From Eutreptiella sp. 'Long Island Sound 2002' (taxonomy: Eukaryota > Protista > Euglenida): a DNA stretch of 64,000 nt. Positions 10,520-58,745 of this stretch are shown here, in pieces. The translations under genes were made by a program, and so were the position numbers. The notes under the pieces are model-generated. The model was not told the DNA's origin. It saw only the letters and a list, made by a program, of their open reading frames with translations, and ran no database searches. Each line of letters opens with the position of its first letter. The stretch's first letter is position 1. The stretch lies in the NCBI GenBank assembly GCA_964036045.1, contig OZ038378.1, forward strand, positions 170,500,001 through 170,564,000, given 5' to 3'.

Positions 10520-11133
10520 CCCCCCCCCCCTTTGTAATAGCTACGCCCTTGTAATAGCTACAGTAGGCGTAGGGACCATATTAATTTGGTACCTAATTTT
10601 AATTCGGTACAAATGTAGTGCAGCCGCATAACACATGGGTTTGGTGACAAATTTGCCAGCTACATAGGGTCATGGACACATTTGTTGTGAGTGTTTGCCC
10701 ACTTGAACCCACATAGCTCTGATTTGGGGGATATTTGTGTACTATATCCCCCTTTCTTGCACCAGCTCACCATGCAATCTTCTCTTTTTCAACCTGGGCG
10801 TCCAATGATTTTCACACGTTCCACCGGTGAGCGTGTGGATGCCACAATGAAGGGGCCATCAAAGACTGGGGACCCGTTTGTGGTGTTGGAGTACATGAAG
10901 GGTGGGCGGGTGGTCACACACCCCTGTGCCGCCCTTTCAAAAACCGAGTTCTCCATCCGATCACCGTCCCCATCCCCGGAGCCGGAGGTGCACTCATACC
11001 ATGCATTCTCTCACGTGTATGTCGGTAGTTGTATGTGTCGTGCGCAAGCCACGCCCTTGTAATAGCTACAGTAGGCGTAGGGACCGTATTAATTCCGTAC
11101 TTTGGCGTAGCTATTACAAGGGGGGGGGGGGGG
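10520..11133 (+). mobile_element. Mini-element A1 (614 bp): poly-C/poly-G TIRs, TA flanks, internal direct repeats, small ORF
   Basis: TA|C11-tttgtaatagctacgcc ... ggcgtagctattacaa-G14|TA. A ~40-bp direct repeat (cttgtaatagctacagtaggcgtagggacc.tattaatt) lies at ~10548 and ~11057. A near-identical copy at 24520 has different flanks. Confidence 0.85.
10772..11062 (+). CDS. 96-aa small ORF of mini-element A1 (SH3/Tudor-like beta domain suspected)
   Basis: Reads MQSSLFQPGRPMIFTRSTGERVDATMKGPSKTGDPFVVLEY. The ATG is in caccATG context, 6 nt after a pyrimidine tract + CAG. Homologous starts occur at 56483, 57572 and 58381. Confidence 0.55.
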   Translation: MQSSLFQPGRPMIFTRSTGERVDATMKGPSKTGDPFVVLEYMKGGRVVTHPCAALSKTEFSIRSPSPSPEPEVHSYHAFSHVYVGSCMCRAQATPL

Positions 11134-12250
11134 TACAGATGTTTCTTGTTTTGGTAGATTTGGCTGCCACGTAGCATGCCACAATGAGGGTGGAAATATT
11201 TTAGCACGGTCCCATGCAGCCCGGAAAATTTTGGCTGAATCACCTCGCAGAGGTTGTTAGATCAAAGCCAGGCAGGCGTATATATGGGGAAAACGCCACA
11301 TACCCCCCCATTTTGGCCATTTTGGGGCTATTCGCGTACCCTACCCCAAGGGGTTGAATTGTTAGTTTAACCCCTTGTAAAATCATTATTTTGTCCAATA
11401 ATCGCATCCCCCAATGAGTTTTTGGTCCGGACCCCCCCCAGACCCCCCCCACTTGAAACCCACTTTTTTCAGGTTTTGAGGGAGGGGGGGGGGTGGGGGG
11501 GGGGGTCAAAAAATGACCCCCCCTTTTTTTGGGTCGAAAATCATGAATCTTTTGGTTTTTTTCGATTTTGAGCCGAAAAAGTTTTTCCGGGTCCCGACTC
11601 TATGGGGTTTGTATGGGGCGGAGTGGGACGAGCGCTGATGCAGTTTATGCACTTTTCAGCCATTTATGCTATGTTGGCGGTTTTGGCAACCTCGGTGACC
11701 CCGTGGTACCCACTCTGAGGTGTGCGAGTGGGGATGTTGTGACAGTATATGCCTACTAGGATACGAAAGGACGTTTTTTGCAGTGTCTAGCCTTGCTTAT
11801 GGCCGTTCACAACCCGTGCAAAGACGCGAAATGACTGTTTCCACCAATAATGGCCTAGTGAATGGGGAGGTACACAACCTGCTGATGCAGTTGTTCACCC
11901 TGGGCAGCTCAAAAATCGAAGTTTTCGAAACTTGTTTTTTTGATATTGTGACCACCCAAAATGACATTTCAAGCTATGCAAAGCATGTTTTAGGCCGTAT
12001 TTACGTGTTTTTCACCTCATTTGGGTGTTAGGTCCGGGGGGGGGGGGGTCTCCCAAGGGATTGGTACACAACCTGTTTATGCAGTTTTTCAACCCGGACA
12101 GCTCAAAAATCGAAGTTTTCGAAACTTGTTTTTTTGATATTGTGACCACCCAAAATGACCATCCAAGCTATGCAAAGCATGTTTTAGGCCGTATTTACGT
12201 GTTTTTCACCTTATTTGGGTGTTAGGTCCGGGGGGGGGGGGGGGGTCTCC

Positions 12251-13894
12251 AGTGGGTATGCCTGTCGCCAGTGGGTATGGGACCAGACCATTGCGTTTTT
12301 GGAAAAGGAAAAGTACAGTGCACAGTCCCTGGACAACGCAGACCAGATACTGTCTTCCCTGCACCGCATTATCCGCCAAAACAAATGGCCTGCCAACCCC
12401 TCACGCTGTGTCCCCCTCTTGTACTTACTCGGTAAGGCCAAATCGCTCCTTAAAGGGATAATCCTATGGAGGCCCATCGCTGCGATAGTCCAGCCACAAA
12501 TCCAGCGTTTCTATCTACGCAATGCAGCGCGTGCTTTCACACTCTTTTTGCGCCTGCTAGTGGAAGAAATTACTGCCTCTTTTTTAGTCCTCAGGATATG
12601 CGACCTCCAGCCCTGGGTACACGGCCTCAGTGACTGGGGATGCACGCAGATTGCAGAGTGCGACTGCTCAGGCCAGTTTAACAATGTTACCCCCCTGTCC
12701 GTCATGCAGGACATGTCGGCAGCTATTAAATGGCTCGCTGCTAAGCGCCGTTGGAATGCCAAAGAGGTGGTATGGAGCATACACCGCGATAACAAACAGC
12801 TGGACCGTGCAGGCGTAGGCACTACGTCTCGTTTTTTCCACATGACTCACGCAGACCTGGAGAATCTCGTGTATTTTTCCCTATTAACTGACACTTACAC
12901 CCAGGCATCAGGCAGATTATGGTCCAGGACAGGTGCCATCCCAATGGGAGGACCTTTTAGCGCCCAAAGTGCGGATTTGCGCTCAGTGTGGGGAGCCAAA
13001 ACGCGAGTGGACCTGATGAGGCGGCTAGGACAGCTCACTTTTTCACCCCGTGGACACCCACTGTGGTCTACCCCACGAGGTAACACGATATCCCTGGCTC
13101 AATTCCGGGACAACGTTCTCCTTGGCGCCCGTGGGCCGACAGCTTCTACAGAAATGCAACATGTCTGTGACGTGCTGTCGGAAACGTGGTCCCTCCCCGT
13201 CCTCTGTGATTGCATGACCGACGATAATCGGGTATGTGCAGGGACGTGCATGCAGCCATCCATCACAGCAATGGGTTTCACAGTGCACATTCACGGTGAC
13301 CATCCCCCATTGGTTTATTCTCAGCCCTCTGGCCTCACCAGCGCATGGCACCTCAAGTACACTGTTACCTTGCAGTCACCGCCAGCGCACGCACACAAGC
13401 ATATATCAAACATCATCGTTAGTGCTGTCCTCAACATACACCCGTTTCTGCACACCTGGGCGGGCTGCCTCCTGAGTGTTGCTTCCTGGGCGCAATTAGC
13501 CTGCTTGTCCGGGTACCCGCGGTCAACAGTTTTGCGCGCGCTGCACTCGGCGGTTCCGCGAATAATCAGCAGGACACCCTGGGACGTCGACAGCACCCTC
13601 GGTTGGTGCTGCCACGTCGTATATTTTTTGCCAGCTACGCGGGACACTGTTTTCTTCCGCCTTCGCCGTTGGCTCCAGGCACATGCAGTGTGGTCTCCTG
13701 CGGCGTATGCCTCTTGGCACATGCCACACCCGGGACCATGCAGTGCCATATGTGCAGACTGGTGCCACGATTTTCCTGTCCTCTCTGTTTTCTCTCCTCT
13801 CCTGGATCCCTGTGAACTCATCCGAACGGGGCTCTGCCCCCGGGGGGAGGGGGGATCACGGTTTCCCACTATATGTGAAGTCGATTGTAGTTAA
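12251..13894 (+). CDS. Penelope-like reverse transcriptase, 5'-truncated, copy 1 (element 12251-14113)
   Basis: PLE-type motifs: PLLYLLGK...WRPIAA (cf. PxFYGLPKIHK..RPIVS), ECDCSGQFNNV (cf. xDVxSLFTNV), GAIPMGGPFSAQSADL (cf. GxPMGSPLSPxLANL), QFRDNV (cf. RYVDD) and thumb LSGYPR (cf. NGYP). No endonuclease domain and no start codon near the 5' end. Confidence 0.8.
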   Translation, partial: SGYACRQWVWDQTIAFLEKEKYSAQSLDNADQILSSLHRIIRQNKWPANPSRCVPLLYLLGKAKSLLKGIILWRPIAAIVQPQIQRFYLRNAARAFTLFLRLLVEEITASFLVLRICDLQPWVHGLSDWGCTQIAECDCSGQFNNVTPLSVMQDMSAAIKWLAAKRRWNAKEVVWSIHRDNKQLDRAGVGTTSRFFHMTHADLENLVYFSLLTDTYTQASGRLWSRTGAIPMGGPFSAQSADLRSVWGAKTRVDLMRRLGQLTFSPRGHPLWSTPRGNTISLAQFRDNVLLGARGPTASTEMQHVCDVLSETWSLPVLCDCMTDDNRVCAGTCMQPSITAMGFTVHIHGDHPPLVYSQPSGLTSAWHLKYTVTLQSPPAHAHKHISNIIVSAVLNIHPFLHTWAGCLLSVASWAQLACLSGYPRSTVLRALHSAVPRIISRTPWDVDSTLGWCCHVVYFLPATRDTVFFRLRRWLQAHAVWSPAAYASWHMPHPGPCSAICADWCHDFPVLSVFSPLLDPCELIRTGLCPRGEGGSRFPTICEVDCS

Positions 13895-14510
13895 CAACTC
13901 AGGTCCGATGGTACCAGCTTGGCGGTGGTTCTCAACGTACCGCTGCGACCCATTGCTTCGCGTGTTGGTGGCCTGCCCACTGGCACCTCTGTGTCTCGCT
14001 CTTGTGACAGAAAGGTACCTATGGTCTGTTAGGCCACTGACGAGCCGATTTTCTTTCTGCGTTTTTGTGCTGGCCGCGTCTTGTGCCCACGTGCATTAAC
14101 TCAGCATTCCTTCGGGGTCTCCCAAGGGACGGGTGCACAACCTGCTTATGCAGTTTTTCACCCCGGACAGCTCAAAAATCGAAGTTTTCGAAACTTGTTT
14201 TTTTGATATTGTGACCACCTAAAATGACCATCTAAGCTATGGAAAGCATGTTTTAGGCCGTATTTACGTGTTTTTCACCCTATTTGGGTATCAGGTCGGG
14301 GGGGGGGGGGGTCTCCCAAGGGACGGGTGCACAACCTGCTTATGCAGTTTTTCACCCCGGACAGCTCAAAAATCGAAGTTTTCGAAACTTTTTTTTTGAT
14401 ATTGTGACCACCCAAAATGACCATCCAAGCTATGCAAAGCATGTTTTAGGCCGTATTTACGTGTTTTTCACCTTATTTGGGTGTTAGGTCCGGGGGGGGG
14501 GGGGGTCTCC

Positions 14511-16154
14511 AGTGGGTATGCCTGTCGCCAGTGGGTATGGGACCAGACCATTGCGTTTTTGGAAAAGGAAAAGTACAGTGCACAGTCCCTGGACAACGCA
14601 GACCAGATACTGTCTTCCCTGCACCGCATTATCCGCCAAAACAAATGGCCTGCCAACCCCTCACGCTGTGTCCCCCTCTTGTACTTACTCGGTAAGGCCA
14701 AATCGCTCCTTAAAGGGATAATCCTATGGAGGCCCATCGCTGCGATAGTCCAGCCACAAATCCAGCGTTTCTATCTACGCAATGCAGCGCGTGCTTTCAC
14801 ACTCTTTTTGCGCCTGCTAGTGGAAGAAATTACTGCCTCTTTTTTAGTCCTCAGGATATGCGACCTCCAGCCCTGGGTACACGGCCTCAGTGACTGGGGA
14901 TGCACGCAGATTGCAGAGTGCGACTGCTCAGGCCAGTTTAACAATGTTACCCCCCTGTCCGTCATGCAGGACATGTCGGCAGCTATTAAATGGCTCGCTG
15001 CTAAGCGCCGTTGGAATGCCAAAGAGGTGGTATGGAGCATACACCGCGATAACAAACAGCTGGACCGTGCAGGCGTAGGCACTACGTCTCGTTTTTTCCA
15101 CATGACTCACGCAGACCTGGAGAATCTCGTGTATTTTTCCCTATTAACTGACACTTACACCCAGGCATCAGGCAGATTATGGTCCAGGACAGGTGCCATC
15201 CCAATGGGAGGACCTTTTAGCGCCCAAAGTGCGGATTTGCGCTCAGTGTGGGGAGCCAAAACGCGAGTGGACCTGATGAGGCGGCTAGGACAGCTCACTT
15301 TTTCACCCCGTGGACACCCACTGTGGTCTACCCCACGAGGTAACACGATATCCCTGGCTCAATTCCGGGACAACGTTCTCCTTGGCGCCCGTGGGCCGAC
15401 AGCTTCTACAGAAATGCAACATGTCTGTGACGTGCTGTCGGAAACGTGGTCCCTCCCCGTCCTCTGTGATTGCATGACCGACGATAATCGGGTATGTGCA
15501 GGGACGTGCATGCAGCCATCCATCACAGCAATGGGTTTCACAGTGCACATTCACGGTGACCATCCCCCATTGGTTTATTCTCAGCCCTCTGGCCTCACCA
15601 GCGCATGGCACCTCAAGTACACTGTTACCTTGCAGTCACCGCCAGCGCACGCACACAAGCATATATCAAACATCATCGTTAGTGCTGTCCTCAACATACA
15701 CCCGTTTCTGCACACCTGGGCGGGCTGCCTCCTGAGTGTTGCTTCCTGGGCGCAATTAGCCTGCTTGTCCGGGTACCCGCGGTCAACAGTTTTGCGCGCG
15801 CTGCACTCGGCGGTTCCGCGAATAATCAGCAGGACACCCTGGGACGTCGACAGCACCCTCGGTTGGTGCTGCCACGTCGTATATTTTTTGCCAGCTACGC
15901 GGGACACTGTTTTCTTCCGCCTTCGCCGTTGGCTCCAGGCACATGCAGTGTGGTCTCCTGCGGCGTATGCCTCTTGGCACATGCCACACCCGGGACCATG
16001 CAGTGCCATATGTGCAGACTGGTGCCACGATTTTCCTGTCCTCTCTGTTTTCTCTCCTCTCCTGGATCCCTGTGAACTCATCCGAACGGGGCTCTGCCCC
16101 CGGGGGGAGGGGGGATCACGGTTTCCCACTATATGTGAAGTCGATTGTAGTTAA
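14511..16154 (+). CDS. Penelope-like reverse transcriptase, copy 2 (element 14511-16373)
   Basis: Protein identical to copy 1, with the same 5' junction and the same GGGGTCTCC flanks. Confidence 0.8.
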   Translation, partial: SGYACRQWVWDQTIAFLEKEKYSAQSLDNADQILSSLHRIIRQNKWPANPSRCVPLLYLLGKAKSLLKGIILWRPIAAIVQPQIQRFYLRNAARAFTLFLRLLVEEITASFLVLRICDLQPWVHGLSDWGCTQIAECDCSGQFNNVTPLSVMQDMSAAIKWLAAKRRWNAKEVVWSIHRDNKQLDRAGVGTTSRFFHMTHADLENLVYFSLLTDTYTQASGRLWSRTGAIPMGGPFSAQSADLRSVWGAKTRVDLMRRLGQLTFSPRGHPLWSTPRGNTISLAQFRDNVLLGARGPTASTEMQHVCDVLSETWSLPVLCDCMTDDNRVCAGTCMQPSITAMGFTVHIHGDHPPLVYSQPSGLTSAWHLKYTVTLQSPPAHAHKHISNIIVSAVLNIHPFLHTWAGCLLSVASWAQLACLSGYPRSTVLRALHSAVPRIISRTPWDVDSTLGWCCHVVYFLPATRDTVFFRLRRWLQAHAVWSPAAYASWHMPHPGPCSAICADWCHDFPVLSVFSPLLDPCELIRTGLCPRGEGGSRFPTICEVDCS

Positions 16155-16770
16155 CAACTCAGGTCCGATGGTACCAGCTTGGCGGTGGTTCTCAACGTAC
16201 CGCTGCGACCCATTGCTTCGCGTGTTGGTGGCCTGCCCACTGGCACCTCTGTGTCTCGCTCTTGTGACAGAAAGGTACCTATGGTCTGTTAGGCCACTGC
16301 CGAGCCGATTTTCTTTCTGCGTTTTTGTGCTGGCCGCGTCTTATGCCCACGTGCATTAACTCAGCATTCCTTCGGGGTCTCCCAAGGGACGGGTGCACAA
16401 CCTGCTTATGCAGTTTTTCACCCCGGACAGCTCAAAAATCGAAGTTTTCGAAACTTGTTTTTTTGATATTGTGACCACCTAAAATGACCATCTAAGCTAT
16501 GGAAAGCATGTTTTAGGCCGTATTTACGTGTTTTTCACCCTATTTGGGTATCAGGTCGGGGGGGGGGGGTCTCCCAAGGGACGGGTGCACAACCTGCTTA
16601 TGCAGTTTTTCACCCCGGACAGCTCAAAAATCGAAGTTTTCGAAACTTTTTTTTTGATATTGTGACCACCCAAAATGACCATCCAAGCTATGCAAAGCAT
16701 GTTTTAGGCCGTATTTACGTGTTTTTCACCTTATTTGGGTGTTAGGTCCGGGGGGGGGGGGGGGGTCTCC

Positions 16771-18414
16771 AGTGGGTATGCCTGTCGCCAGTGGGTATGG
16801 GACCAGACCATTGCGTTTTTGGAAAAGGAAAAGTACAGTGCACAGTCCCTGGACAACGCAGACCAGATACTGTCTTCCCTGCACCGCATTATCCGCCAAA
16901 ACAAATGGCCTGCCAACCCCTCACGCTGTGTCCCCCTCTTGTACTTACTCGGTAAGGCCAAATCGCTCCTTAAAGGGATAATCCTATGGAGGCCCATCGC
17001 TGCGATAGTCCAGCCACAAATCCAGCGTTTCTATCTACGCAATGCAGCGCGTGCTTTCACACTCTTTTTGCGCCTGCTAGTGGAAGAAATTACTGCCTCT
17101 TTTTTAGTCCTCAGGATATGCGACCTCCAGCCCTGGGTACACGGCCTCAGTGACTGGGGATGCACGCAGATTGCAGAGTGCGACTGCTCAGGCCAGTTTA
17201 ACAATGTTACCCCCCTGTCCGTCATGCAGGACATGTCGGCAGCTATTAAATGGCTCGCTGCTAAGCGCCGTTGGAATGCCAAAGAGGTGGTATGGAGCAT
17301 ACACCGCGATAACAAACAGCTGGACCGTGCAGGCGTAGGCACTACGTCTCGTTTTTTCCACATGACTCACGCAGACCTGGAGAATCTCGTGTATTTTTCC
17401 CTATTAACTGACACTTACACCCAGGCATCAGGCAGATTATGGTCCAGGACAGGTGCCATCCCAATGGGAGGACCTTTTAGCGCCCAAAGTGCGGATTTGC
17501 GCTCAGTGTGGGGAGCCAAAACGCGAGTGGACCTGATGAGGCGGCTAGGACAGCTCACTTTTTCACCCCGTGGACACCCACTGTGGTCTACCCCACGAGG
17601 TAACACGATATCCCTGGCTCAATTCCGGGACAACGTTCTCCTTGGCGCCCGTGGGCCGACAGCTTCTACAGAAATGCAACATGTCTGTGACGTGCTGTCG
17701 GAAACGTGGTCCCTCCCCGTCCTCTGTGATTGCATGACCGACGATAATCGGGTATGTGCAGGGACGTGCATGCAGCCATCCATCACAGCAATGGGTTTCA
17801 CAGTGCACATTCACGGTGACCATCCCCCATTGGTTTATTCTCAGCCCTCTGGCCTCACCAGCGCATGGCACCTCAAGTACACTGTTACCTTGCAGTCACC
17901 GCCAGCGCACGCACACAAGCATATATCAAACATCATCGTTAGTGCTGTCCTCAACATACACCCGTTTCTGCACACCTGGGCGGGCTGCCTCCTGAGTGTT
18001 GCTTCCTGGGCGCAATTAGCCTGCTTGTCCGGGTACCCGCGGTCAACAGTTTTGCGCGCGCTGCACTCGGCGGTTCCGCGAATAATCAGCAGGACACCCT
18101 GGGACGTCGACAGCACCCTCGGTTGGTGCTGCCACGTCGTATATTTTTTGCCAGCTACGCGGGACACTGTTTTCTTCCGCCTTCGCCGTTGGCTCCAGGC
18201 ACATGCAGTGTGGTCTCCTGCGGCGTATGCCTCTTGGCACATGCCACACCCGGGACCATGCAGTGCCATATGTGCAGACTGGTGCCACGATTTTCCTGTC
18301 CTCTCTGTTTTCTCTCCTCTCCTGGATCCCTGTGAACTCATCCGAACGGGACTCTGCCCCCGGGGGGAGGGGGGATCACGGTTTCCCACTATATGTGAAG
18401 TCGATTGTAGTTAA
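16771..18414 (+). CDS. Penelope-like reverse transcriptase, copy 3 (element 16771-18633)
   Basis: Protein identical to copy 1, with a synonymous SNP near 18351. Confidence 0.8.
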   Translation, partial: SGYACRQWVWDQTIAFLEKEKYSAQSLDNADQILSSLHRIIRQNKWPANPSRCVPLLYLLGKAKSLLKGIILWRPIAAIVQPQIQRFYLRNAARAFTLFLRLLVEEITASFLVLRICDLQPWVHGLSDWGCTQIAECDCSGQFNNVTPLSVMQDMSAAIKWLAAKRRWNAKEVVWSIHRDNKQLDRAGVGTTSRFFHMTHADLENLVYFSLLTDTYTQASGRLWSRTGAIPMGGPFSAQSADLRSVWGAKTRVDLMRRLGQLTFSPRGHPLWSTPRGNTISLAQFRDNVLLGARGPTASTEMQHVCDVLSETWSLPVLCDCMTDDNRVCAGTCMQPSITAMGFTVHIHGDHPPLVYSQPSGLTSAWHLKYTVTLQSPPAHAHKHISNIIVSAVLNIHPFLHTWAGCLLSVASWAQLACLSGYPRSTVLRALHSAVPRIISRTPWDVDSTLGWCCHVVYFLPATRDTVFFRLRRWLQAHAVWSPAAYASWHMPHPGPCSAICADWCHDFPVLSVFSPLLDPCELIRTGLCPRGEGGSRFPTICEVDCS

Positions 18415-19220
18415 CAACTCAGGTCCGATGGTACCAGCTTGGCGGTGGTTCTCAACGTACCGCTGCGACCCATTGCTTCGCGTGTTGGTGGCCTGCCCAC
18501 TGGCACCTCTGTGTCTCGCTCTTGTGACAGAAAGGTACCTATGGTCTGTTAGGCCACTGCCGAGCCGATTTTCTTTCTGCGTTTTTGTGCTGGCCGCGTC
18601 TTGTGCCCACGTGCATTAACTCAGCATTCCTTCGGGGTCTCCCAAGGGACGGGTGCACAACCTGCTTATGCAGTTTTTCACCCCGGACAGCTCAAAAATC
18701 GAAGTTTTCGAAACTTGTTTTTTTGATATTGTGACCACCTAAAATGACCATCTAAGCTATGGAAAGCATGTTTTAGGCCGTATTTACGTGTTTTTCACCC
18801 TATTTGGGTATCAGGTCGGGGGGGGGGGTCTCCCAAGGGACGGGTGCACAACCTGCTTATGCAGTTTTTCACCCCGGACAGCTCAAAAATCGAAGTTTTC
18901 GAAACTTGTTTTTGTGATATTGTGATCACCTAAAATGACCATCCAAGCTATGGAAAGCATGTTTTAGGCCGTATTTACGTGTTTTTCACCCTATTTGGGT
19001 ATCAGGTCGGGGGGGGGGGGGTCTCCCAAGGGACGGGTGCACAACCTGCTTATGCAGTTTTTCACCCCGGACAGCTCAAAAATCGAAGTTTTCGAAACTT
19101 TTTTTTTGATATTGTGACCACCCAAAATGACCATCCAAGCTATGCAAAGCATGTTTTAGGCCGTATTTACGTGTTTTTCACCTTATTTGGGTGTTAGGTC
19201 CGGGGGGGGGGGGGGTCTCC

Positions 19221-20864
19221 AGTGGGTATGCCTGTCGCCAGTGGGTATGGGACCAGACCATTGCGTTTTTGGAAAAGGAAAAGTACAGTGCACAGTCCCT
19301 GGACAACGCAGACCAGATACTGTCTTCCCTGCACCGCATTATCCGCCAAAACAAATGGCCTGCCAACCCCTCACGCTGTGTCCCCCTCTTGTACTTACTC
19401 GGTAAGGCCAAATCGCTCCTTAAAGGGATAATCCTATGGAGGCCCATCGCTGCGATAGTCCAGCCACAAATCCAGCGTTTCTATCTACGCAATGCAGCGC
19501 GTGCTTTCACACTCTTTTTGCGCCTGCTAGTGGAAGAAATTACTGCCTCTTTTTTAGTCCTCAGGATATGCAACCTCCAGCCCTGGGTACACGGCCTCAG
19601 TGACTGGGGATGCACGCAGATTGCAGAGTGCGACTGCTCAGGCCAGTTTAACAATGTTACCCCCCTGTCCGTCATGCAGGACATGTCGGCAGCTATTAAA
19701 TGGCTCGCTGCTAAGCGCCGTTGGAATGCCAAAGAGGTGGTATGGAGCATACACCGCGATAACAAACAGCTGGACCGTGCAGGCGTAGGCACTACGTCTC
19801 GTTTTTTCCACATGACTCACGCAGACCTGGAGAATCTCGTGTATTTTTCCCTATTAACTGACACTTACACCCAGGCATCAGGCAGATTATGGTCCAGGAC
19901 AGGTGCCATCCCAATGGGAGGACCTTTTAGCGCCCAAAGTGCGGATTTGCGCTCAGTGTGGGGAGCCAAAACGCGAGTGGACCTGATGAGGCGGCTAGGA
20001 CAGCTCACTTTTTCACCCCGTGGACACCCACTGTGGTCTACCCCACGAGGTAACACGATATCCCTGGCTCAATTCCGGGACAACGTTCTCCTTGGCGCCC
20101 GTGGGCCGACAGCTTCTACAGAAATGCAACATGTCTGTGACGTGCTGTCGGAAACGTGGTCCCTCCCCGTCCTCTGTGATTGCATGACCGACGATAATCG
20201 GGTATGTGCAGGGACGTGCATGCAGCCATCCATCACAGCAATGGGTTTCACAGTGCACATTCACGGTGACCATCCCCCATTGGTTTATTCTCAGCCCTCT
20301 GGCCTCACCAGCGCATGGCACCTCAAGTACACTGTTACCTTGCAGTCACCGCCAGCGCACGCACACAAGCATATATCAAACATCATCGTTAGTGCTGTCC
20401 TCAACATACACCCGTTTCTGCACACCTGGGCGGGCTGCCTCCTGAGTGTTGCTTCCTGGGCGCAATTAGCCTGCTTGTCCGGGTACCCGCGGTCAACAGT
20501 TTTGCGCGCGCTGCACTCGGCGGTTCCGCGAATAATCAGCAGGACACCCTGGGACGTCGACAGCACCCTCGGTTGGTGCTGCCACGTCGTATATTTTTTG
20601 CCAGCTACGCGGGACACTGTTTTCTTCCGCCTTCGCCGTTGGCTCCAGGCACATGCAGTGTGGTCTCCTGCGGCGTATGCCTCTTGGCACATGCCACACC
20701 CGGGACCATGCAGTGCCATATGTGCAGACTGGTGCCACGATTTTCCTGTCCTCTCTGTTTTCTCTCCTCTCCTGGATCCCTGTGAACTCATCCGAACGGG
20801 GCTCTGCCCCCGGGGGGAGGGGGGATCACGGTTTCCCACTATATGTGAAGTCGATTGTAGTTAA
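19221..20864 (+). CDS. Penelope-like reverse transcriptase, copy 4 (element 19221-21083)
   Basis: As copy 1 except ICDLQ changed to ICNLQ, a change shared with copy 5. Confidence 0.8.
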   Translation, partial: SGYACRQWVWDQTIAFLEKEKYSAQSLDNADQILSSLHRIIRQNKWPANPSRCVPLLYLLGKAKSLLKGIILWRPIAAIVQPQIQRFYLRNAARAFTLFLRLLVEEITASFLVLRICNLQPWVHGLSDWGCTQIAECDCSGQFNNVTPLSVMQDMSAAIKWLAAKRRWNAKEVVWSIHRDNKQLDRAGVGTTSRFFHMTHADLENLVYFSLLTDTYTQASGRLWSRTGAIPMGGPFSAQSADLRSVWGAKTRVDLMRRLGQLTFSPRGHPLWSTPRGNTISLAQFRDNVLLGARGPTASTEMQHVCDVLSETWSLPVLCDCMTDDNRVCAGTCMQPSITAMGFTVHIHGDHPPLVYSQPSGLTSAWHLKYTVTLQSPPAHAHKHISNIIVSAVLNIHPFLHTWAGCLLSVASWAQLACLSGYPRSTVLRALHSAVPRIISRTPWDVDSTLGWCCHVVYFLPATRDTVFFRLRRWLQAHAVWSPAAYASWHMPHPGPCSAICADWCHDFPVLSVFSPLLDPCELIRTGLCPRGEGGSRFPTICEVDCS

Positions 20865-21479
20865 CAACTCAGGTCCGATGGTACCAGCTTGGCGGTGGTT
20901 CTCAACGTACCGCTGCGACCCATTGCTTCGCGTGTTGGTGGCCTGCCCACTGGCACCTCTGTGTCTCGCTCTTGTGACAGAAAGGTACCTATGGTCTGTT
21001 AGGCCACTGCCGAGCCGATTTTCTTTGTGCGTTTTTGTGCTGGCCGCGTCTTGTGCCCACGTGCATTAACTCAGCATTCCTTCGGGGTCTCCCAAGGGAC
21101 GGGTGCACAACCTGCTTATGCAGTTTTTCACCCCGGACAGCTCAAAAATCGAAGTTTTCGAAACTTGTTTTTTTGATATTGTGACCACCTAAAATGACCA
21201 TCTAAGCTATGGAAAGCATGTTTTAGGCCGTATTTACGTGTTTTTCACCCTATTTGGGTATCAGGTCGGGGGGGGGGGGGTCTCCCAAGGGACGGGTGCA
21301 CAACCTGCTTATGCAGTTTTTCACCCCGGACAGCTCAAAAATCGAAGTTTTCGAAACTTTTTTTTTGATATTGTGACCACCCAAAATGACCATCCAAGCT
21401 ATGCAAAGCATGTTTTAGGCCGTATTTACGTGTTTTTCACCTTATTTGGGTGTTAGGTCCGGGGGGGGGGGGGGTCTCC

Positions 21480-48700: not shown

Positions 48701-49217
48701 AGACTCGTGAGCGCATCCAATCAAAGGAACGCGCATTATGTACGTGCGCCTGCACCACCCCACCCTCCACCCCGGGCCGGGACATCTGCGGATATGTATA
48801 CGCCGTGGGGCTCATTTCTGATGCAGATGGACCTTGTCATTGTCCACCGGCTGCATGACTGGGAACCCTCCACACAGAGCACCACATCCCAGAAACCCAT
48901 CCGGGCTTTCCTCTATAACATGATGTTTCCCCCTGTGCATACATGGAGACATACACACACCGAGGCTCTGGCCTGCCTAGGCGAGGGCTGGATGCAGGGT
49001 GGTGCCTTGGTTTCCTACCACCCTGTGCAGCGACAAAGACACGGGCACCCCCCATACAGACAGCCGGCCCGCAGACCCACGCAGGCCTTCCTCTATAATA
49101 TCCCCCCCCCCGGCCCGCCATCCGTTTGCATTTGTCTGTTTTTTAATTAGGTCACACCCCATCCGTTGGCACACCTAACATTCATTCATTCGGACCCACA
49201 GAGGGTCAGAATGAGCC

Positions 49218-49787
49218 GATCCAGTCCGGGGGCTTGGGCCGTGCTCCACTCCGCCCCGGATGCTCCAATCCGGGGCGTCTTTTTGTCGTATTCTCTCCGT
49301 TGCCTCGGACGCTCCAGTCCGTGGCACCGGGTTCACCCCCGGACGATCCAGTCCGGGGGCTAGTGCCGTGCTTCATTCCGCCCCGGATGCTCCAATCCGG
49401 GGCGTCTTTTTATCGTATTCTCTCCGTTGCCTCGGATGCTCCAGTCCGTGGCACCTGGTTCACCCCGGGACGATCCAGTCCGGGGGCTAGTGCCGTGCTT
49501 CATTCCGCCCCGGATGCTCCAATCCGGGGCGTCTTTTTATCGTATTCTCTCAGTTGCCTCGGATGCTCCAGTCCGTGGCACCGGGTTCTCCCCCGGACGA
49601 TCCAGTCCGGGGGCTTGGGCCGTGCTCCACTCCGCCCCGGATGCTCCAATCCGGGGCGTCTTTTTGTCGTATTCTCTCCGTTGCCTCGGACGCTCCAGTC
49701 CGTGGCACCGGGTTCACCCCCGGACGATCCAGTCCGGGGGCTCGGGCCGAGCTCCACTCCGCCCCGGATGCTCCAATCCGGGGCGTC
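49218..49787. repeat. 127-bp tandem repeat, ~4.5 copies, three hairpins per unit
   Basis: gatccagtccggggg starts at 49218, 49345, 49472, 49599 and 49726, an exact period of 127. Confidence 0.95.
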
Positions 49788-52662
49788 ATGTATCTTACTC
49801 TCTTTGCTGTCTTTGGCGTTTGCGTGTGTGGTGCATTGGTGCTTTTTTTTTTTCGCGCGCCCATCGTCGTTGCTCCTCCCCCGCTCCCCCCGCTCCGCTT
49901 TGCTTTCCCTCCCGCCCTTTCCTCTCCCTCTCTGCCCCCGTCTCCCTCGGTCCCGTTTCTCTCTTCCCCTGCTCCCTCCCGCTCCCTTTGTGGTGGCTTT
50001 GCTGGGGCACGCACTCATGCACCTAGTTTCTACGCGCGCATGTTGCTATGTTTTGGGGCGGGCACACAGTGGCGAGAGGCCAATAGGCACCGCCAAAGGC
50101 AAACAACCTAATACTGAGGCCTTGTGGACAGCTCTGAACCTTGATCCTGAGGGGTTACCTCGAGTACTGTGACGCGAGCAGGCTACGCCAGCTCATCTTG
50201 GTCTGAGCCAAAAAAAAAACTTATACCGAGGCCTTGTGCCAAACCCCCCCATACATTGGAGACATAAATACACGCAGGCATACATGTATACATATCTCTC
50301 GGGGGCTGTCCATAATGTGCCAACTCGGTGGGTGTTTCGGTCCGATGCGCCAAAATATTGTTCCCTCGGCCGGGGGGGGGGGGGGACTATGTGTATACTT
50401 TTTGAAATCTGTGAGAAAAGGCCATTCCAGAAATGTATGGGTTGGAGGGGTGGGGGGTAGGTGGTCACATTTTTGAGCACAGAGCTGGAAATTGGACAAC
50501 ACACTGGACGGAGCACTACACAGGGGACGATTCATTATTCCAAAGCCGAATCGTCGCCCTTGTTGTCCCTCTGCACAAGGGCTGGGACCCCGTAGGGGCA
50601 TGCATCGCCCTGCTTGTGAATGGGAATATGTTTCTTCACTTTCCCTCAGTCCTGCAGCCTATGTGCCTTCACTTTCAAGGGTTTTCCGAACATAACCCAC
50701 ATGCCCCCCCCTCCGGAACCCTCAGTCGGCAGAAATCGGCACCAATATTTGCTTTTGTACCACTTCTTGTCAATGTGTGGGAACTGTGGGAACGGAGAGG
50801 GTGCGCATACCCCAGCGCAACATGCCGGAATTTTTTTTTCCCGCGGTTCGGGGCTGCTCACGGTCATGCGTAAGAACCAACCCGTGGTTCCGCGGTCGAA
50901 TTTCGGGGAAAAGGGGAGCATCCACACTGCGCGTGCACCGCGTCAGGTATTTGAACAACTTCCCTAGGATATGGTCTACTGAGAGAGGAGTTGTAAATGG
51001 TACCTGGTGGGCTCTTGAGGCATTACCACTCCCCCTGATTGGCTCTGGATGATTGCTGTTATTTCCTGGTGGGCCAAACCCAGTACCCGCACCGCGCGCG
51101 CACCGCGTGTGATACTCCCCCAAAGCGTGCGCAGGAACCAACCCCTGGTTCCGCGGTCGATCATTGCCGGTTCCTGGCCACGGGTGGGGGAGGTTATGTG
51201 ATTGGCTCCACAAGCGTTTTCCCTGCAGGTAATCAGTTCATGTGAAAATAAACATGGGACTGAGTGTCAGCATCTTGCAGTCCACCGACATGCTGACCTT
51301 GGGTGTGGCCACCGGACTTTTGCCAACAAAAAAAAAATCTGCCCCCCCCCAAGCCCTGCTGGAACGCTAAGGCACCAGGTTGGGAAGGGAGGGGGTCCTG
51401 GTCACCGGAGTCACTGTGGAGAAATCACTAAAACACAACACATACAACGATCCTTCCCACCAAGGTGCTCCATTGATAGGTCAGGCTGTCGTGCTGCAAA
51501 TAGGGGCTTGCTCAGGTAGAACCAACCTCTGTAACTTCCGTCAACTCTGACCCCTTGCGATGACAAACAGCACACCTGCAGGCAGATTTGGGGCGGAGCT
51601 GAGGAAAGGTCACAAGAACAATACAGATGACTGATGTGGGATTCTTATACCGTTGGGACACGGCTGGGGATCCTGTCAATGCTGTGGTCAAGTGGTTGTG
51701 GCGGCTGCGCCCCTTATGTGGACCTGCCTCATTGTGCGCAACCCTACTTTCTGTATCGGGTGAGCTTCCGTACCCCCCCACCCCCACCCCCTGGAGCAAT
51801 TGTCGTCCAACGCGTTTACACCCAAAATGCTCTCATTGCAATGGTGAGTTCAACTATTTCATTACCCCACCACCACTTTGGCCGGTGGGGGTCATGGGGA
51901 CATGTTGATTTCCCCCCATTCTTCCAGCATCTTTGGGCCACAACGGTCACAGGGAGAATTTTACGGTGCCGAAGGTGCTGGAGCCTGTGGTTCTGGGAAC
52001 GAAATGTCACGACAAATTGTCTCAGCTCATCAGACTCAGCTAATCCTCACCAGGCGTCAGATGCGCTACCACAGTCATTTGTGGGATCATTGCCCCCCCC
52101 CCCCCCCTTTGTATAAGCTACGCCCTTGTCCAAGCTACAGCGGGTGTAGGGACCGTATTAATTTGGCACCTAATTTGAGGGGGGGGGGGTACGCCGACAG
52201 TGTCAGATTCGGAGTGCATGCATGCCACAGTGTGGCGTCCATGCATGAGACACTGCTCAGGTTGCTGTGTGTTTGCCCGCACGCAGCAGAGCGCGCGTGG
52301 TTGGGTGTTCTGTATTATCTGCAGGCGAGGGGGGGGCTCATGTGTGGTAGTTCATTGTCCTGGTGTCAGCCCCGCCTCATGGTATCATGCAAAATGCCTT
52401 ATTGAAGTTGCGTGTCGACGGCTTTGCATTCAAAAGTTCAGAGATGATGTTTGTATGGGCTCCTCTTGGTGGGTCACCCTCAACAACTTCAAGGATTGGC
52501 TCCTCTCGTTGAACTGTCTGATCCACGAGGTGGAGACCGATAGTATGACATTGCGCAACGCAGTCCACATCACCCTTCCTGTTTTGGATGCCTTGCTTCT
52601 GTGTGCAGGGCTCACGTAAGACAGACACACATACGGGACCACATAAGACATGGGTTTGGTGA

Positions 52663-52870
52663 CAAATTTGCCAGTCACGTAGGGTCATGGACATGTTTCT
52701 TGTGAGTGTTTGCCCACTTGAACCCACATAGCCCTGATTTTGGGGATATTTGTGCATTCTATTATATTCTATAGAATGCACAAATATCCCCAAAATCAGG
52801 GCTATGTGGGTTCAAGTGGGCAAACACTCACAAGAAACATGTCCATGACCCTACGTGACTGGCAAATTTG
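52663..52870. repeat. Perfect inverted repeat, 100-bp arms with an 8-nt loop, made of mini-element A-related sequence
   Basis: 52663-52762 is the exact reverse complement of 52771-52870 (loop tatattct). The arm is homologous to ~10648-10745 inside A1. Confidence 0.95.
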
Positions 52871-55800
52871 CCGCAGAAGGGGAGGGGGGGGGTGAACCAG
52901 GACACCCCAACATGTATTTGTCAAATGGGCCCCACGATGCACTGATTATGAAAGGTGTGGGGTCTAGAGAATTTCGCGGCCCGATGCCGCCAAGGCAACA
53001 CCGGTGCTGTGGGGCTCACGCAATCCGCCATTCCATATCTGAGGGTCCGTGACCGTTGTTTTTCTGACCTTGGCCGTGCTTGCGCAAGGGGGAGGGGGGG
53101 TACGGGACCACATAAGACATGGGTTTGGTGACAAATTTGCCATTTTCATTACAGTGGCAGCCCATTGAGCACGCGCATGATTTTCATAAAGTTGCATTAC
53201 CTCCTGTGACTCCCCCCCTTTTTTCTCTTTTTTCCCCCACAGGTGTGGAATGCCACTCCCCAGCGCGCTGTACCCCTGCTTGTGGTCCTGCTCCCTCCTT
53301 GGTCCCCCCCTGTGCGTCGCCGACCACTCTCCCTAAACTAGAATAGGGACAGCAGTGTTCTCTGCCCCTATGCGAATAGCGACCAGCTGCGCCTGAATGT
53401 CATCCCCCTCTCCTTTCCTGTCGGTGATAGTGTATGAAATGCAACCCGCTGATTACCTGGTCCTGGTCACCCTGGTCACCCTTCAATCTTCACACCGCTG
53501 TCCTTTTCAGCCTACAGTCATTGTGCCTCATGCACACTGGGAAGCCTACGGGCGTGGCAGCCTGCCACTGCATTACCTGGTTTCAGACTCAGCTAATCCT
53601 CAGTACGTGTCAGATCCGCTACCACAGCCAATGTGGGATCATCGTAGCACTGGACAGCTCTGAACCTTGATTCCTAGAGGTCAGGTTAGGACCTCTCGAG
53701 TACTGTGAAGTGAGCAGGCTACGCCAGCTCATCTTGGTCAGCACAAAAAAAAATTGTTGCATTACTTGCTTTCATTTGTCACCATGACAAGCTCTGCACA
53801 CCAACGTTTTTTATGCTGTGTTATTTCGTCTTCTGCCGCAATTTCTGTGCCCCACAGTGTGTGTGTACGGCGGTACTACGGTCCCCCGGGGGGTGGTGGG
53901 GGACTGTGACTCAGTGACCGTCGCCCAGAGGGTGGCGGGGGACCGTCTTCCCTGGGGTGGGGAAGGACAAGGGGGGGGGGGGTACGTTTGTCAACGCCTC
54001 ATCACATGAGTGGGACAATATGGGGCTGCGGTTGGTGGTAGGGCAAGTTGGCGCACGATCATGGAACACACGGCTCTGCATTTTGACAATTCATACAACA
54101 CAGTGGTGACCACATTTCAATAGCAGGGCTTGAGGGGCCCCTGAGGCCCTTTAAATATGTGCATGGGAAGGCACAATTTTGGTTTATGAAGAATCATTTT
54201 TCCATGCGTATTTCATCGGACTGCTTTTCTGTAATACTGTCGTCAATGCATTAATGAATTTCATCGTCCAAACTCACTGCTTGGAACCCTTGTCTAGCAT
54301 TCCAACTTTCTCTTCCTCGAAGTTAGAAAACCTCCCATGAATGTAGGGGTGAAAAGATCCAAAATGAAATGTGTGCCCAACACCTCCGAATAGTGGATAT
54401 CACATCTTGCAAAATTCCCTCGTGCACATACGGCCGTCTAAGCCAAAAGAAAGGCAAAAGTGCACAGTGAGGTCCCGTAGCGGCAAAAACCAAGTCAAGG
54501 CTGTGAGTGCCCTATTTTGCATTTGGAAGGTGAACCAATAAGGGTGCACAAGATGCAAATATTGATATTTGCGATTGAGAGTCCTTGATTTGGGAGGTAT
54601 TGGCAGGGACCTTGAATGCAAAACCCATACAACAAATGGACACAGTGGAATTTGCAATTGAGAGCACTTCATTTTCAAGCTTTAGGCAAGGCCCTCACAT
54701 GCAAAACACCTAAAATGAATGGACACAATGGAACGCCGGAGGAGGCGCCATGGAAGCAAAACCTCTTGAGATGTGTGGCTCCTTGGGGAACTGGAGACAG
54801 GTGGTAGAGAACAGCAAGAGTGAGGCAAAAAGTGCACAGCGAGATCCCTTAGTGAGGACAAATGAGGTCAACGTTGTGGGTGCCGTAACATGCTTACAAA
54901 ACGTAGAGCAATAAGGGTGCTGAGAAATCCGGTAGCAGGCACAACCAAAAGCGCGGCAACTGGTTCTGTAAAGTGCATGCAAAAGCTATGGCACTGGGGT
55001 ACCTCCAAAATGCATTGGAGAGAGCACTAGCAAAGGGGGAACAACGCCACTGAGGGTCACACAACCTTGACAACAACAATTACCCCTTACTGTTGGTGGT
55101 TGAGCTGTTCGGTGATGCCTTCGGCCCTTGCTCTGCCCCTTATTCTCCCACTGCACTGTCTTGACCTCCATGCACCACCATGGCACCCATGGCTCCGACC
55201 AATGCACCCAAACTGTAGTTCCGAAGTAAGGGAAGTTCTGTGTGTAGCTCTTTATTCACCACAGCTGTACATACTCACCTACTGACAGCCCTCTTTGTAT
55301 CTTGCAAAACTCTTGTGCAAGGAGCCACCAAAAATTGCCATGGAGTTTTGCACTGTCCCTCTTCAGCAGTAGGGATAGGCAGATAACTGATGAATGGATG
55401 CAGTGCATTATGAATTTTGCTTATTTGCATCATGTGCATGGCACCATCAGCATCTATGCATGTCAGCGTGTGTCCCAAAGCCTTGGGCGAACTGGCCATG
55501 ATTTCTACATAGTATGCGGTAAGTGGTTGGTCGGCAGGGGCGTCACTTGGCAACAGTCCCCCCAGGGTGGGGGGGAACCGTCGTCCCTGCCGGGGGGATG
55601 GACATGGGGGGGGAAGGGATGATACGATGGTGGACTCCACGTTTCCGTATTGCAGAGATGTGGTTCTCTTCGGCATGATATTGTCATGGGGACTTGAGGT
55701 GCAGGCGTTTGATCTCACACCAGAGCAGTCGCCCGCTTCATTCACACGGGCAAAAAAGCTCGCAACAGCAATGGGGGTCAGACACGGCCTCACGCACATG

Positions 55801-56274
55801 GGCAAGCACTTCAACCAAAACCAGACGGAGCCGGTAGAGGCCCAATGACACCCCGGGTAATCGCCGTCTCTTCCCAGCAGTGTCTTACCCGGGGCCCAAT
55901 GACATAATGTGGAGGAGACGGCAATTTCGCCATCTCTTACCCAGCGGGCCAAATGACACCCCGAGTAAAAGATCACAGTTTTGTACCCAAGAATGCCATT
56001 CCCAAACCCATTTCAAAACCTGACGCCAAGGCCCCTCCAAAGCCTGCCCCGCAAGGCAAGCATGTAAAATTTCAGATGATGCACAAACATGGTCCCCACG
56101 CTTAGACAAAGCTATATTTGCGCACGACGCACAGTACCAAAGCTGCCCATACCTCACCAAACCAGAGTTGTCACAACAGGGCACCGAAACACAATGTGCA
56201 GGCCAAATTCAGCATATCCTTGATGCTCTCACTGCGAATCAGGGGCATGAGGAGCTGTGTAATGGAAGCTCTTA

Positions 56275-56975
56275 CCCTCCTCCCCCCGTGTCGTTCCCAC
56301 CCCTTGTTGTTCCCCAAGGGGGGGGTGGGGGACCGTCACTTGGTCAACCCAAAATTTTTTATTGCAGCTCGTTGTGTTGTTGTGTGGGTGGTTGTGTTGT
56401 GGGGCACTACCACTTGCATCCCTTGCACTCATGGCAGGACATTTTGCTCACTTTCGCTGAAATGGAACTTGACAACACAACCATGTTTCCCCCTGGGACA
56501 AGTGTGATGTTCATCCGAAGAGTGCCCGTGGTGTGTGGGGCATGGGACACAGTTTTGGGAACAAGTTGTATTTTACAAGGGACATTCCCGAAGGGAAATG
56601 GGTTCCCAAAAATCTGCTTGCGCCTGCCAAGCCACCGATCAAGAAGGCAAAACCACCACCCAAGAGTGCTGCCCAAAGCATTCCAGTGGAAAGTGGTGAG
56701 CATGTGCAAGAGTTCAAGGTGAAGTGGAGCAGGACCAAGAAATTTTACACCGAGCCGGTCAAGGAGTAGGTCTCCGTACATTGGCAGCCCTTTGAACGCA
56801 TCCTGTGCTGAGTGCTTTCGTTTTATGCTGCAATTTCTGTGCCTGCAAACGTGCGTGTACGGTTGGGGTGTGGTCCCCCAGGGGGGGGTGGGGGACCGTC
56901 ACTTGGTGATCATCCCCCAGGGGGTGGTGGGGGACCGTCTTCCCTGGGGTGGGGAACGACACGGGGGGGCGAGGG
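56275..56975 (+). mobile_element. Mini-element subfamily B (~700 bp)
   Basis: TA|C-rich-gtgtcgttccc ... gggaacgacac-G-rich|TA. Direct repeat gggggggtgggggaccgtcacttggt at ~56319 and ~56882. Frameshifted ORF from 56483 (MFPPGTSVMFIR) to 56769 (GEHVQEFKVKWSRTKKFYTEPVKE). Confidence 0.75.
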
Positions 56976-57332
56976 TACCAACATTGACCATCGTTTTCCT
57001 GATTTTCAGCGTGCTTGCGCAAATGGGGGGGGGGGGGGTTACCCCCCCCCCATGGCCTTGTGTGATATTCACGTTGCTGGTTGTGGTGAGCACCTCCCAG
57101 CCTGGGGTCTTCGTGATGACCGCATACCGGGCACTGATCAGGCCATCAGGGGAGGACGCCATGGGCAGAAGTTGCATTCTGGATTCCCACCCAGGAAGGT
57201 GGATGCCCAGGGCAGTGCAGATGCCCGCAGTAGTACGGATGCCTGCTTGTCATAACAGAAGGTTCAAAGGCGAGAGGCCAATAGGTGCTGCCACAGGCCA
57301 ACAGAGCCAACCACCAAGGCCTTGTGCCAACA

Positions 57333-57901
57333 CCCCCCCCCCCCTGCGCAAGCACCGCCTTGTCTAAGCACCAGGACCCGGTCTGACCGTTACTTTTCCC
57401 GAATTTTCTGACCACAGCTTTTGCGGTCAGAAAGTAGGCAAAGCGTGATTGTGTGCCAATTGTAGAGGGAAAGAGGGGCTGTTTCATGCTTGTGATGAGT
57501 CCTCCTGCTCATAACAACATTGTGCTTGTTACTGCACCCCACTGTTCTTTGTTTTGGTGTGATTTTCAGCCATGACTAATGTCGTTACCCCTGGCTTGGC
57601 TGTCACGTACATCCGGTCCACCGGTGAGCATGCGCCTGCCACTGTCATCGGTCGTTCTACTCGTGGGGAAGATTCCACAACTGAGGAATTACAAGCCCAG
57701 AGATGCCCCCATACCCCACAGCCCCACCAAAACCGCCCTGTTGCGACTTGTGCTTAGGGTGAGGTATGGGCAGGTGTTCGGGACATGCTTTCTTTTGGTA
57801 CCACGCGTTGCGCGGTTGCACCACCTTGTCTGAGCACCAGGACCCGGTCTGACCGTCACTGCCCTGACCCGGCTGGTGCTTGCACAAGGGGGGGGGGGGG
57901 G
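57333..57901 (+). mobile_element. Mini-element subfamily C (569 bp)
   Basis: C12-tgcgcaagcacc ... ggtgcttgcacaa-G14|TA. Direct repeat ccttgtct.agcaccaggacccggtctgaccgt at ~57358 and ~57823. ORF at 57572 (MTNVVTPGLAVTYIRSTGEHAPATVIGRSTRG) follows ttttcag|ccATG. Confidence 0.75.
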
Positions 57902-58142
57902 TACTTTCTAGTAGTTTTTTGGACCTGGGTCCACTTGCAGCACTCGTCCGGAGCCACTACTGCTGATTTTCTTGCTCAAACTTTGTGGGATTGTTTTTTT
58001 TTTCCACAAACCATGGTATCATCAACCAAAATTTGGAGGGCATCCGAAGCACCATGACAGAGTCCTCATGCTGTGCCATTTCACGCATGCTGCTGCTGCT
58101 GTTCTTGCTTGCTAAAAGGGGTAGCCCCAACCTGCATCCTAG

Positions 58143-58745
58143 CCCCCCCCCCCCCCCCCCCGTGTCCACCGAATGCCGTGTCCAACGAACACTTCCGTTC
58201 GGACCGTATTTTTTAGGACATAATTGATGACGTACTTAGTTTTGTACCGGGCTTTAGAATCAAGATTTCAGGCTAAAGAACTGGGGAAATGAGGGGTTGT
58301 AATGAGTAATTGTGGGTAAATTTGTAAAGCAGGATGTGAGGGAATTGTGTCCCTCAACTACAGGACCTCCATTGCCCACCATGACTGATTCTCTGCTTGC
58401 ACCTGGCTCGGAGGTGCTGTACAAGCGGTGTCCGTCCCAAAGGTCCCTAAGCCAGATCAGGCTGCCATTTCTGCCTGTACCAAGAACAAGGAGGGCCCCA
58501 AGCCCGGGGAGCATGTTCAGCGTTTCCGCATGGAGCGGGACCGCAACAAGGGCTTCTACTCTGAAAGCGCCAATCGGAGGCCTCCATCGCTTTGTACTTT
58601 GAATGGGCTGGGTGTCTTGTGCCTAGGGATGTGTTACCGCCGTTTTGCAATATTGTCGTGCGCACCGAACAGCGTGTCCAACGAACACACCCGTTCGTAT
58701 TTTTTGAGGACAAAATTGTTCGTTGGACACGGGGGGGGGGGGGGG
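58143..58745 (+). mobile_element. Mini-element subfamily D (603 bp)
   Basis: C19-gtgtccaccgaa ... ttcgttggacac-G15. Direct repeat gtgtccaacgaacac...ccgttcg at ~58178 and ~58674. Frameshifted ORF from 58381 (MTDSLLAPGSEVLYKR ... GEHVQRFRMERDRNKGFYSE). Confidence 0.75.

Follow-up and report, generated by a model that had tools for sequence, protein, structure and literature searches.

A window of 64,000 nucleotides from the euglenid Eutreptiella sp. 'Long Island Sound 2002' (contig OZ038378.1 of assembly GCA_964036045.1, positions 170,500,001 to 170,564,000 of the forward strand) contains five elements of about 600 bp that begin with a run of C and end with a run of G. These mini-elements, designated A1, A2, B, C and D and belonging to four subfamilies, are very probably (at a probability of about 0.9) non-autonomous, internal-deletion derivatives of a pogo-type transposon family (IS630-Tc1-mariner group) in this euglenid genome. 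The family is a new variant within the pogo superfamily, and is neither a new class nor a case of gene capture.

That the elements form a non-autonomous mobile family, as had been proposed in the initial annotation of this DNA, is borne out. Their ends are shared with those of a full-length element at another locus (L005). The same annotation regarded the family as gene-carrying and as matching no described class. Neither view is upheld, because the small open reading frame (ORF) of the elements is a fused remnant of both ends of the family's own transposase gene, and because the full-length partner encodes a pogo-type DDE_1 transposase. The annotation had itself named, as the outcome that would speak against its proposal, that the elements are simple internal-deletion derivatives of a described group, and this is what was found. 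An apparent gene-carrying MITE (a miniature inverted-repeat transposable element) of unknown class is hence accounted for by a known superfamily.

The full-length element and its deletion derivatives

The full-length element (L005, positions 6448-9562; 3115 bp) has C-type ends and the direct-repeat layout of the mini-elements, in which a subterminal direct repeat of 40-55 bp adjoins the left end on its inner side and recurs about 5-35 bp in from the right end. As read from the sequence, it carries an apparently intact transposase gene, with about 235 bp before its start at the left end and about 200 bp after its stop at the right end. In the product of exon 1 (6682-7654), a module termed D1 is followed by an S/P-rich linker and a WW domain; next come a basic stretch and the first half of an HTH_Tnp_Tc5-like domain. 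Exon 2 (8053-9365) encodes the remainder of the transposase. The two exons are separated by the single GT-AG intron of 398 nt (7655-8052), which contains a fourfold tandem repeat of about 68 bp, each unit opening with a T-run. Splicing in silico yields a coding sequence of 2286 nt without an internal stop and a product of 761 aa. The order of this product is the D1 barrel, the S/P-rich linker, the WW domain, helix-turn-helix-like modules and the DDE_1 core, followed by an acidic DSDSD stretch, a beta-rich module termed D2, a KP-rich basic tail and the motif GKHVQLFKM..KGFY. The predicted catalytic triad of the spliced product consists of D383, D514 and D550, that is, DD35D.

The catalytic core was also recovered from protein relatives of the small ORFs. 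P0168 and P0170 (267-270 aa) extend from D2 back through the acidic DSDSD stretch into a region (…CLYCVDGAPSHMH…PPNSTMWAQACDKHE…) that corresponds to the second half of a DDE core, and their 90% clusters contain longer members, P0332 (454 aa), which spans the entire DDE core, and P0329 (384 aa), in which the end of D1 and a WW domain precede the C-terminal half of the DDE core. P0332 matches Pfam DDE_1 at 23.1 bits (cut-off, 22; E = 6.3e-5). Among the ESM-Atlas neighbours for residues 20-325, the top named clusters are all DDE_1, some with HTH_Tnp_Tc5, at scores of 0.96-0.93; a PDB sequence search with P0332 returned chance hits only. A Harbinger-type partner was considered and rejected: the Harbinger/PIF-type DDE_Tnp_4 ORF beside the A-type copy at locus L001 (10884-11768; 31.1 bits; cysteine-rich C-terminus) is not enclosed by the poly-C ends but is part of a different repeat, and the repeat that flanks it also adjoins the A-type copy at L002 (~10300-10380).

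The transposase bears accessory domains. In an AlphaFold model of exon 1, D1 (residues 1-60) forms a five-stranded barrel with a predicted local distance difference test score (pLDDT) of about 97. Foldseek matched this barrel to the Tudor domains of PHF20 (template modelling score, TM, 0.79) and TDRD3 (TM 0.71) and also of SMN and SGF29, with target TM of 0.63-0.79 and E-values of only 0.006-0.03, as well as to KOW and the retroviral integrase C-terminal barrel; on the predicted structure, D1 is a Tudor-like barrel. The WW domain of exon 1 scores 36.1 bits in Pfam and is 45-50% identical to the WW domains of Nedd4, Itch and YAP. A proline-tyrosine motif (LPAY or LPPY) occurs directly after it (residues ~126-135 of the L005 exon 1 product, and in P0329) and could be the domain's own ligand. 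A PWWP-like nature of D2, suggested by eye from VWAK..G.WG…F, found no support in Pfam (E up to 10, 19 members) or in the Atlas. With its Tudor-like and WW modules, this active-looking pogo transposase may be tethered to chromatin or a proline-rich partner.

Alignment of copies with the L005 element by blastn reveals a deletion series, in which a size gradient of 0.5-1.7 kb connects the short copies to the 3.1-kb element. The copy at L004 (1643 bp) lacks positions 443-1966 of the full element and that at L006 (1733 bp) lacks positions 732-2176, whereas the C-type copy at L001 (705 bp) retains 2648-3104 together with rearranged left-end pieces. Window element C (569 bp) retains positions 1-332, which align with its own positions 6-337, and its right part is too diverged for alignment. 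The A-type lineage has an intermediate of 1.7 kb at L008, which retains D1 and a helix-turn-helix module as well as the end of the DDE domain, D2 and the tail. Public runs, which were used as assembled contigs that break at the repeat edge, contain contigs that skip internal parts of A1 (515, 345, 261, 249 and 221 bp, among others), and several of these skips carry a few filler letters at the joint, the pattern that abortive gap repair leaves. A variant in which position 10773 is joined to 11023 is the host of the C-type insertion at L007.

By analogy with Tc1/mariner and pogo elements, full-length copies would supply in trans a transposase that binds the repeated terminal motif. The enzyme would then cut at the outer edge of the C or G run and insert the element at a TA dinucleotide, which would be duplicated. 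Internal deletions may arise, as in the analogous systems, from abortive gap repair following excision.

Terminal structure and target-site duplication

All five mini-elements have one plan, and the plan and the coordinates given in the initial annotation were confirmed for each of them by sequence reading and a repeat search. A C-run is followed by a terminal motif of 12-17 bp and then by another copy of that motif, with which a direct repeat begins. A small ORF, the other copy of the direct repeat, a spacer, the inverted motif and a G-run complete the plan. Counted with the homopolymer, the terminal inverted repeats (TIRs) measure 24-31 nt and are 87-96% complementary in the repeat search. 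The motif occurs as two tandem copies at the left end of all elements and as one direct and one inverted copy at the right end, which can consequently form a hairpin from a palindrome (right-end DNA fold, z = -4.2 for A and -3.2 for D).

All five lie on the forward strand. The A-type element A1 (10520-11133) has a TIR of 28 nt (96% complementary) and a direct repeat of 54 bp (93%); its left TIR is at 10520-10547, its direct repeats at 10539-10592 and 11047-11100, and its right TIR at 11104-11133, with TA at 10518-10519 and 11134-11135. The second A-type element, A2 (24520-25131), has the TIR and direct repeat of A1 and TA on both sides. The TIR and direct repeat are 31 nt (87%) and 37 bp in B (56275-56975; TA on both sides), 24 nt (92%) and 43 bp in C (57333-57901; TA on the right side only), and 27 nt (96%) and 41 bp in D (58143-58745; no TA flank). 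The TA noted earlier at both ends of A1, A2 and B is thus seen in the sequence. The direct repeat itself was found as described, whereas the length first assigned to it, 25-45 bp, was somewhat too short, since it reaches 54 bp in A.

Little nucleotide identity remains between the subfamilies, as had been noted; blastn gives no cross-match beyond the homopolymers. Within subfamily A, the identity between A1 and A2 is 99.2% (612 bp), and no similarity exists between their flanks. The recent, independent insertion first suggested for A1 and A2 is upheld, and their near-identity points to recent movement. The two copies have the same orientation and lie about 0.6-0.7 kb outside the two ends of an array (11866-23905) of tandem units of about 2.26 kb, each with an ORF of about 557 aa and 2-3 copies of a satellite of about 192 bp that ends in GGTCC-G11-16-TCTCC.

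The proposal of a TA duplication of the IS630-Tc1-mariner kind is substantiated by two nested insertions, for each of which an uninterrupted homologue is available. At L007, a C-type copy is inserted in an A-type element as GGTAGTTG-TA[C14…G15]TA-TGTGTCG, after which the right flank continues as A-type sequence to its end, and both A1 and A2 read GGTAGTTG-TA-TGTGTCG at this site. At L002, an A-type copy is inserted in an older A-type copy as GAACATTTG-TA[C13…G10]TA-GGCTTC, and the uninterrupted counterpart, a copy at L001, reads GAACATTTG-TA-GGCTTC. Because the uninterrupted homologues contain a single TA, TA must be duplicated on insertion, and the C and G runs are part of the inverted repeats. 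TA adjoins 24 of the 39 ends in the window and eight loci; the ends without it are those of old or rearranged copies, namely window C and D, the copies at L001 and the full copy at L005. Searches with the flanks of all five window elements found no uninterrupted homologue, and no empty allele of A1 was seen in the contigs of the public runs, which break at the repeat edge. The insertion of B into an older C-like copy was unusable as a further duplication test, the left flank being inverted. For a truncated copy at 52093, a paralogue of the left flank (53583-53642) was considered as an empty site, but the homology ends at the junction, which is therefore a repeat boundary.

Words of C10 or G10 number 199, where 0.98 would be expected. 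Runs of C or G of at least 10 nt total 51 in the window, compared with 7 runs of A or T, and at a length of at least 12 the counts are 35 and 1. Because only 17 of the 51 runs are at element ends (13 are in a Penelope-like array and 21 outside both), long C/G runs are a genome-wide trait. The homopolymer caps would accordingly be C-starting TIR termini lengthened by a genome-wide C/G expansion bias. Their occurrence at both ends in every subfamily may leave room for a function.

Two other stretches of the window are bounded by such runs. At 38883-38981, C18, 26 bp, G16 and TA are followed 25 bp later by C14, which is either a run-capped unit of 60 bp without a terminal motif or a coincidence. 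At 36564-36752, C13 and G14 (then TA) surround 162 bp that continue into an RNase H-like frame (…TNSEYVV…NGW), and these runs are not of the pogo family.

Small ORFs and alternative explanations

The small ORFs are homologous across the subfamilies, and every one of them in the window (A1, A2, B, C and D) is degraded. The ORF of A1 (10772-11062, forward strand) is a remnant of the transposase N-terminus, and the A ORF runs out of D1 into the 3' region. The remnant in B starts at 56462 with the first ~15 residues of D1 and continues, after a frameshift, into D2, the basic tail and the C-terminal motif, with a stop at 56769; in tblastn, the transposase C-terminus matches 56518-56760. The ORF of C (57572-57757) is D1 shortened by an internal deletion, and D retains only the first ~11 codons plus, in another frame, the basic tail and C-terminal motif (GEHVQRFRMERDRNKGFY). 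Retained remnants are 60-120 aa long. The small ORFs match no Pfam family, and the whole window gave no match in Rfam.

The A-type ORF has 42 relatives, of which the fuller ones add a P/S/K-rich linker and the motif GKHVQLF..YDRKK; this motif is also present in window B and D, in shifted frames. A C-type ORF from a fetched locus, used as query, gave 150 more relatives with two conserved modules, D1 (consensus PG..V.Y.RSTGE..PATI.G…) and D2 (EVQIVWAKA.RG.WGLGHVFEGKLYFTKDIVDDSFVP), the latter followed by a KP-rich tail. With P0129 as query, 326 family relatives were found in the representative library, and none of the best 150 exceeds 290 aa; the longer family proteins came from cluster members rather than from this library. 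Family ORFs are numerous in one ENA assembly, and a few are on environmental contigs of the Joint Genome Institute. D1 is colinear with the N-terminus of the 761-aa transposase, and D2, the basic tail and the GKHVQLF motif with its C-terminus, so that the internal ORF derives from the element's own transposase ends and not from a captured gene, as in Pack-type elements. A homologous ORF is found in subfamilies without nucleotide similarity because deletions that spare the ends keep these coding pieces.

Colinearity bears directly on a different explanation, in which the elements would be a new class of non-autonomous elements with a Tudor-like cargo gene unrelated to a transposase. Such a gene would accord with the lack of a Pfam match, the presence of a homologous ORF in four subfamilies and the absence of a transposase from all five elements, but it is highly improbable given that the ORF pieces are the termini of a DDE_1 transposase whose gene lies in an element with these ends, that intermediates of 1.6-1.7 kb exist and that the window copies are frameshifted or truncated. 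In-frame mini-proteins, with D1 joined to D2 and the tail, might alternatively act in trans as KP-like dominant-negative regulators or chromatin readers. D1, which is predicted to fold with high confidence, and the tail are in one frame in P0091, P0104, P0122, P0125, P0137 and P0146; transcripts of family ORFs (P0028, P0129 and P0327, in one case with an identical protein) are present in the Eutreptiella culture transcriptome MMETSP0811; and A-type pieces occur in contigs of an estuary metatranscriptome run, which may contain DNA. The in-frame set is biased, however, since a protein search returns in-frame copies, and window B, C and D either have frameshifts or retain no more than a few dozen residues, so that a role of this kind is unlikely. 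An extension of this idea, itself rather doubtful, is that the D1-D2 mini-ORFs give small chromatin- or partner-binding modulators of transposition and that gene-borne copies are removed from pre-mRNA like nonconventional introns. Such removal is proposed because the C-run and G-run ends would pair strongly and TA is repeated at both junctions. If it were true, the family would be a concrete candidate for the proposed MITE origin of euglenid nonconventional introns (PMC3935182, PMC12501133); as late as 2013, according to the first of these papers, which deals with euglenid introns, transposable elements had not been identified in any euglenid genome (PMC3935182). The family can be used for asking whether MITE insertions seed these introns.

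The terminal sequence TACCCC…GGGGTA is palindromic, and flanks alone therefore cannot distinguish a duplicated TA from the last dinucleotide of the inverted repeat. The single TA at the site in the uninterrupted homologues of both nested insertions argues against the latter. It might also be supposed that the homopolymers are flanking sequence or assembly artefacts, but element copies repeatedly end in them, both in the window and in seven contigs from a second assembly, and also in contigs from independent runs, and both suppositions are scarcely credible.

Several points weigh against the assignment of the mini-elements to a pogo-type family. The Pfam support is thin: DDE_1 is barely over its cut-off, and HTH_Tnp_Tc5 in exon 1 reaches 18.2 bits (cut-off, 22.2) over profile positions 2-35 of 66, the domain being split by the intron. 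The AlphaFold model of the catalytic half is unusable (mean pLDDT, 44). A full-length copy is known for the C-type lineage only, at 71% identity to window C, and the ends of this copy are eroded (C6 and GGAGGG) with no clean TA; it lies in an A-type element as CTACTGT[…]CTTGG, where CTACTGTAGCTTGG was expected. TA is missing on one side of window C and both sides of window D. The placement within pogo draws on domain match, triad spacing, TA and sizes, and mobilization in trans and binding of the transposase to the motif would follow from analogy.

Further copies and comparison with known systems

At least nine further family pieces are present in the window besides the five mini-elements, all on the forward strand unless stated otherwise. 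An A-like left end at 52093-52189 continues for 80 bp and then passes directly into a G-run and TA, and is a truncated copy. It is followed by an inverted duplication of A-type internal sequence (52639-52870; no strand assigned), a C-like right end (…GTGCTTGCGCAA plus G-run, then TA; 53040-53100) and a B-like right end that is 80% identical to B positions 532-695 (G-run, then TA; 53814-53982). An exact 42-bp repeat (TACGGGACCACATAAG…TTTGCC) at 52632-52673 and 53101-53142 brackets a segment of about 430 bp that ends in the C-like right end. C-like left ends are found at 32725-32790, with TA before it and no matching right end nearby, and at 40650-40717. The latter is within the ~1 kb between two pieces of a histidine-kinase gene, a GAF plus HisKA ORF (39434-40126) and an HATPase_c ORF (41165-42088). 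A remnant of the transposase C-terminus (D2 plus tail, 60% identity in tblastn; 55953-56093) and a right end at 56976-57038 are parts of one older C-like copy, and B sits between the two. At 56976-57051, the C-like right end with G14 is followed by TTA, C10 and a left-end-like stretch, such that two element ends abut.

A stretch of about 220 bp at 60967-61186, which reads CCCC-TTTTGTAAT…ATTACAA-GGGG and then TA, is a probable fifth member of the family, as judged by its B-like GGGGACCGTCACTTGG repeats, its internal C-runs and a weak blastn match to the direct repeat of B. Elsewhere in the window, a 127-bp tandem repeat occurs in 4.5 copies with 95% matches (49217-49787), and from 62001 to 64000 the G+C content jumps to 78.6%, with ORFs of 640-670 codons open on both strands that have no Pfam match.

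The family is very abundant, and its ends far outnumber its centres. In two runs of the source organism, summed contig depth is 23-28 on the unique flank of A1, 3-9 x 10^5 across the right direct repeat and the greater part of the left 300 bp, and 2-5 x 10^4 over the D1 coding part; A-type ends thus exceed the unique flank by some four orders of magnitude, which is a rough guide and gives no copy number. With its transposase gene, ends and deletion series, a very abundant and recently active euglenid DNA transposon family is defined. In searches of the literature, neither poly-C-ended transposons nor this family were found to be described.

The pogo superfamily comprises Fot, Passer, Tigger, pogoR, Lemi and Mover; its elements are 1.2-5.2 kb long with transposases of 300-977 aa, and Passer and Fot typically have a DD35D spacing (Gao et al., 2020; PMC7386202). 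The present family has the catalytic features of pogo, a DDE_1 domain and a D-D-D triad whose spacing of 35 is within the 29-56 residues between the last two of pogo, as well as the TA duplication, the short TIRs (24-31 nt) and the sizes of element (3115 bp) and transposase (761 aa). It resembles pogo in its DDE_1 domain with DD35D, its TA duplication and its TIRs of no more than 40 bp; the HTH_Tnp_Tc5-like region, which scores below the cut-off, may be a further resemblance. In contrast to described pogo elements, its TIRs are capped by C/G homopolymers of 6-19 nt, and it has a subterminal direct repeat of 37-54 bp in an asymmetric layout that is conserved across all subfamilies here even though no nucleotide similarity remains between them. 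Its transposase differs by the Tudor-like N-terminal barrel, the WW domain and an extra C-terminal domain, additions that the same survey reports only for domesticated genes (CENPB, POGK and POGZ; PMC7386202), and its host is a euglenid.

With regard to MITEs, the small size, the TIRs and duplication shared with a longer element and the high abundance agree, but the ORF remnants do not agree with a lack of coding capacity, and the mini-elements are better called internal-deletion derivatives than classical MITEs. Stowaway of plants and the submariner elements of Pandoravirus and Acanthamoeba are short, abundant Tc1/mariner MITEs that have the TA duplication and the TIRs of their autonomous partners and no working transposase. 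The copies described here differ in that they still hold pieces of the start and end of the transposase ORF and form a graded size series. In KP-type repressors of P elements, an N-terminal part of the transposase stays in frame after internal deletion; here the helix-turn-helix region is deleted, and competition for binding sites would not apply as such. The TBE1 and Tec elements of ciliates, which are related to Tc1/mariner, have C-rich inverted-repeat ends (C4A4 in TBE1) that copy the host telomere repeat, whereas the ends of the present family are pure homopolymers in a genome that is rich in such runs.

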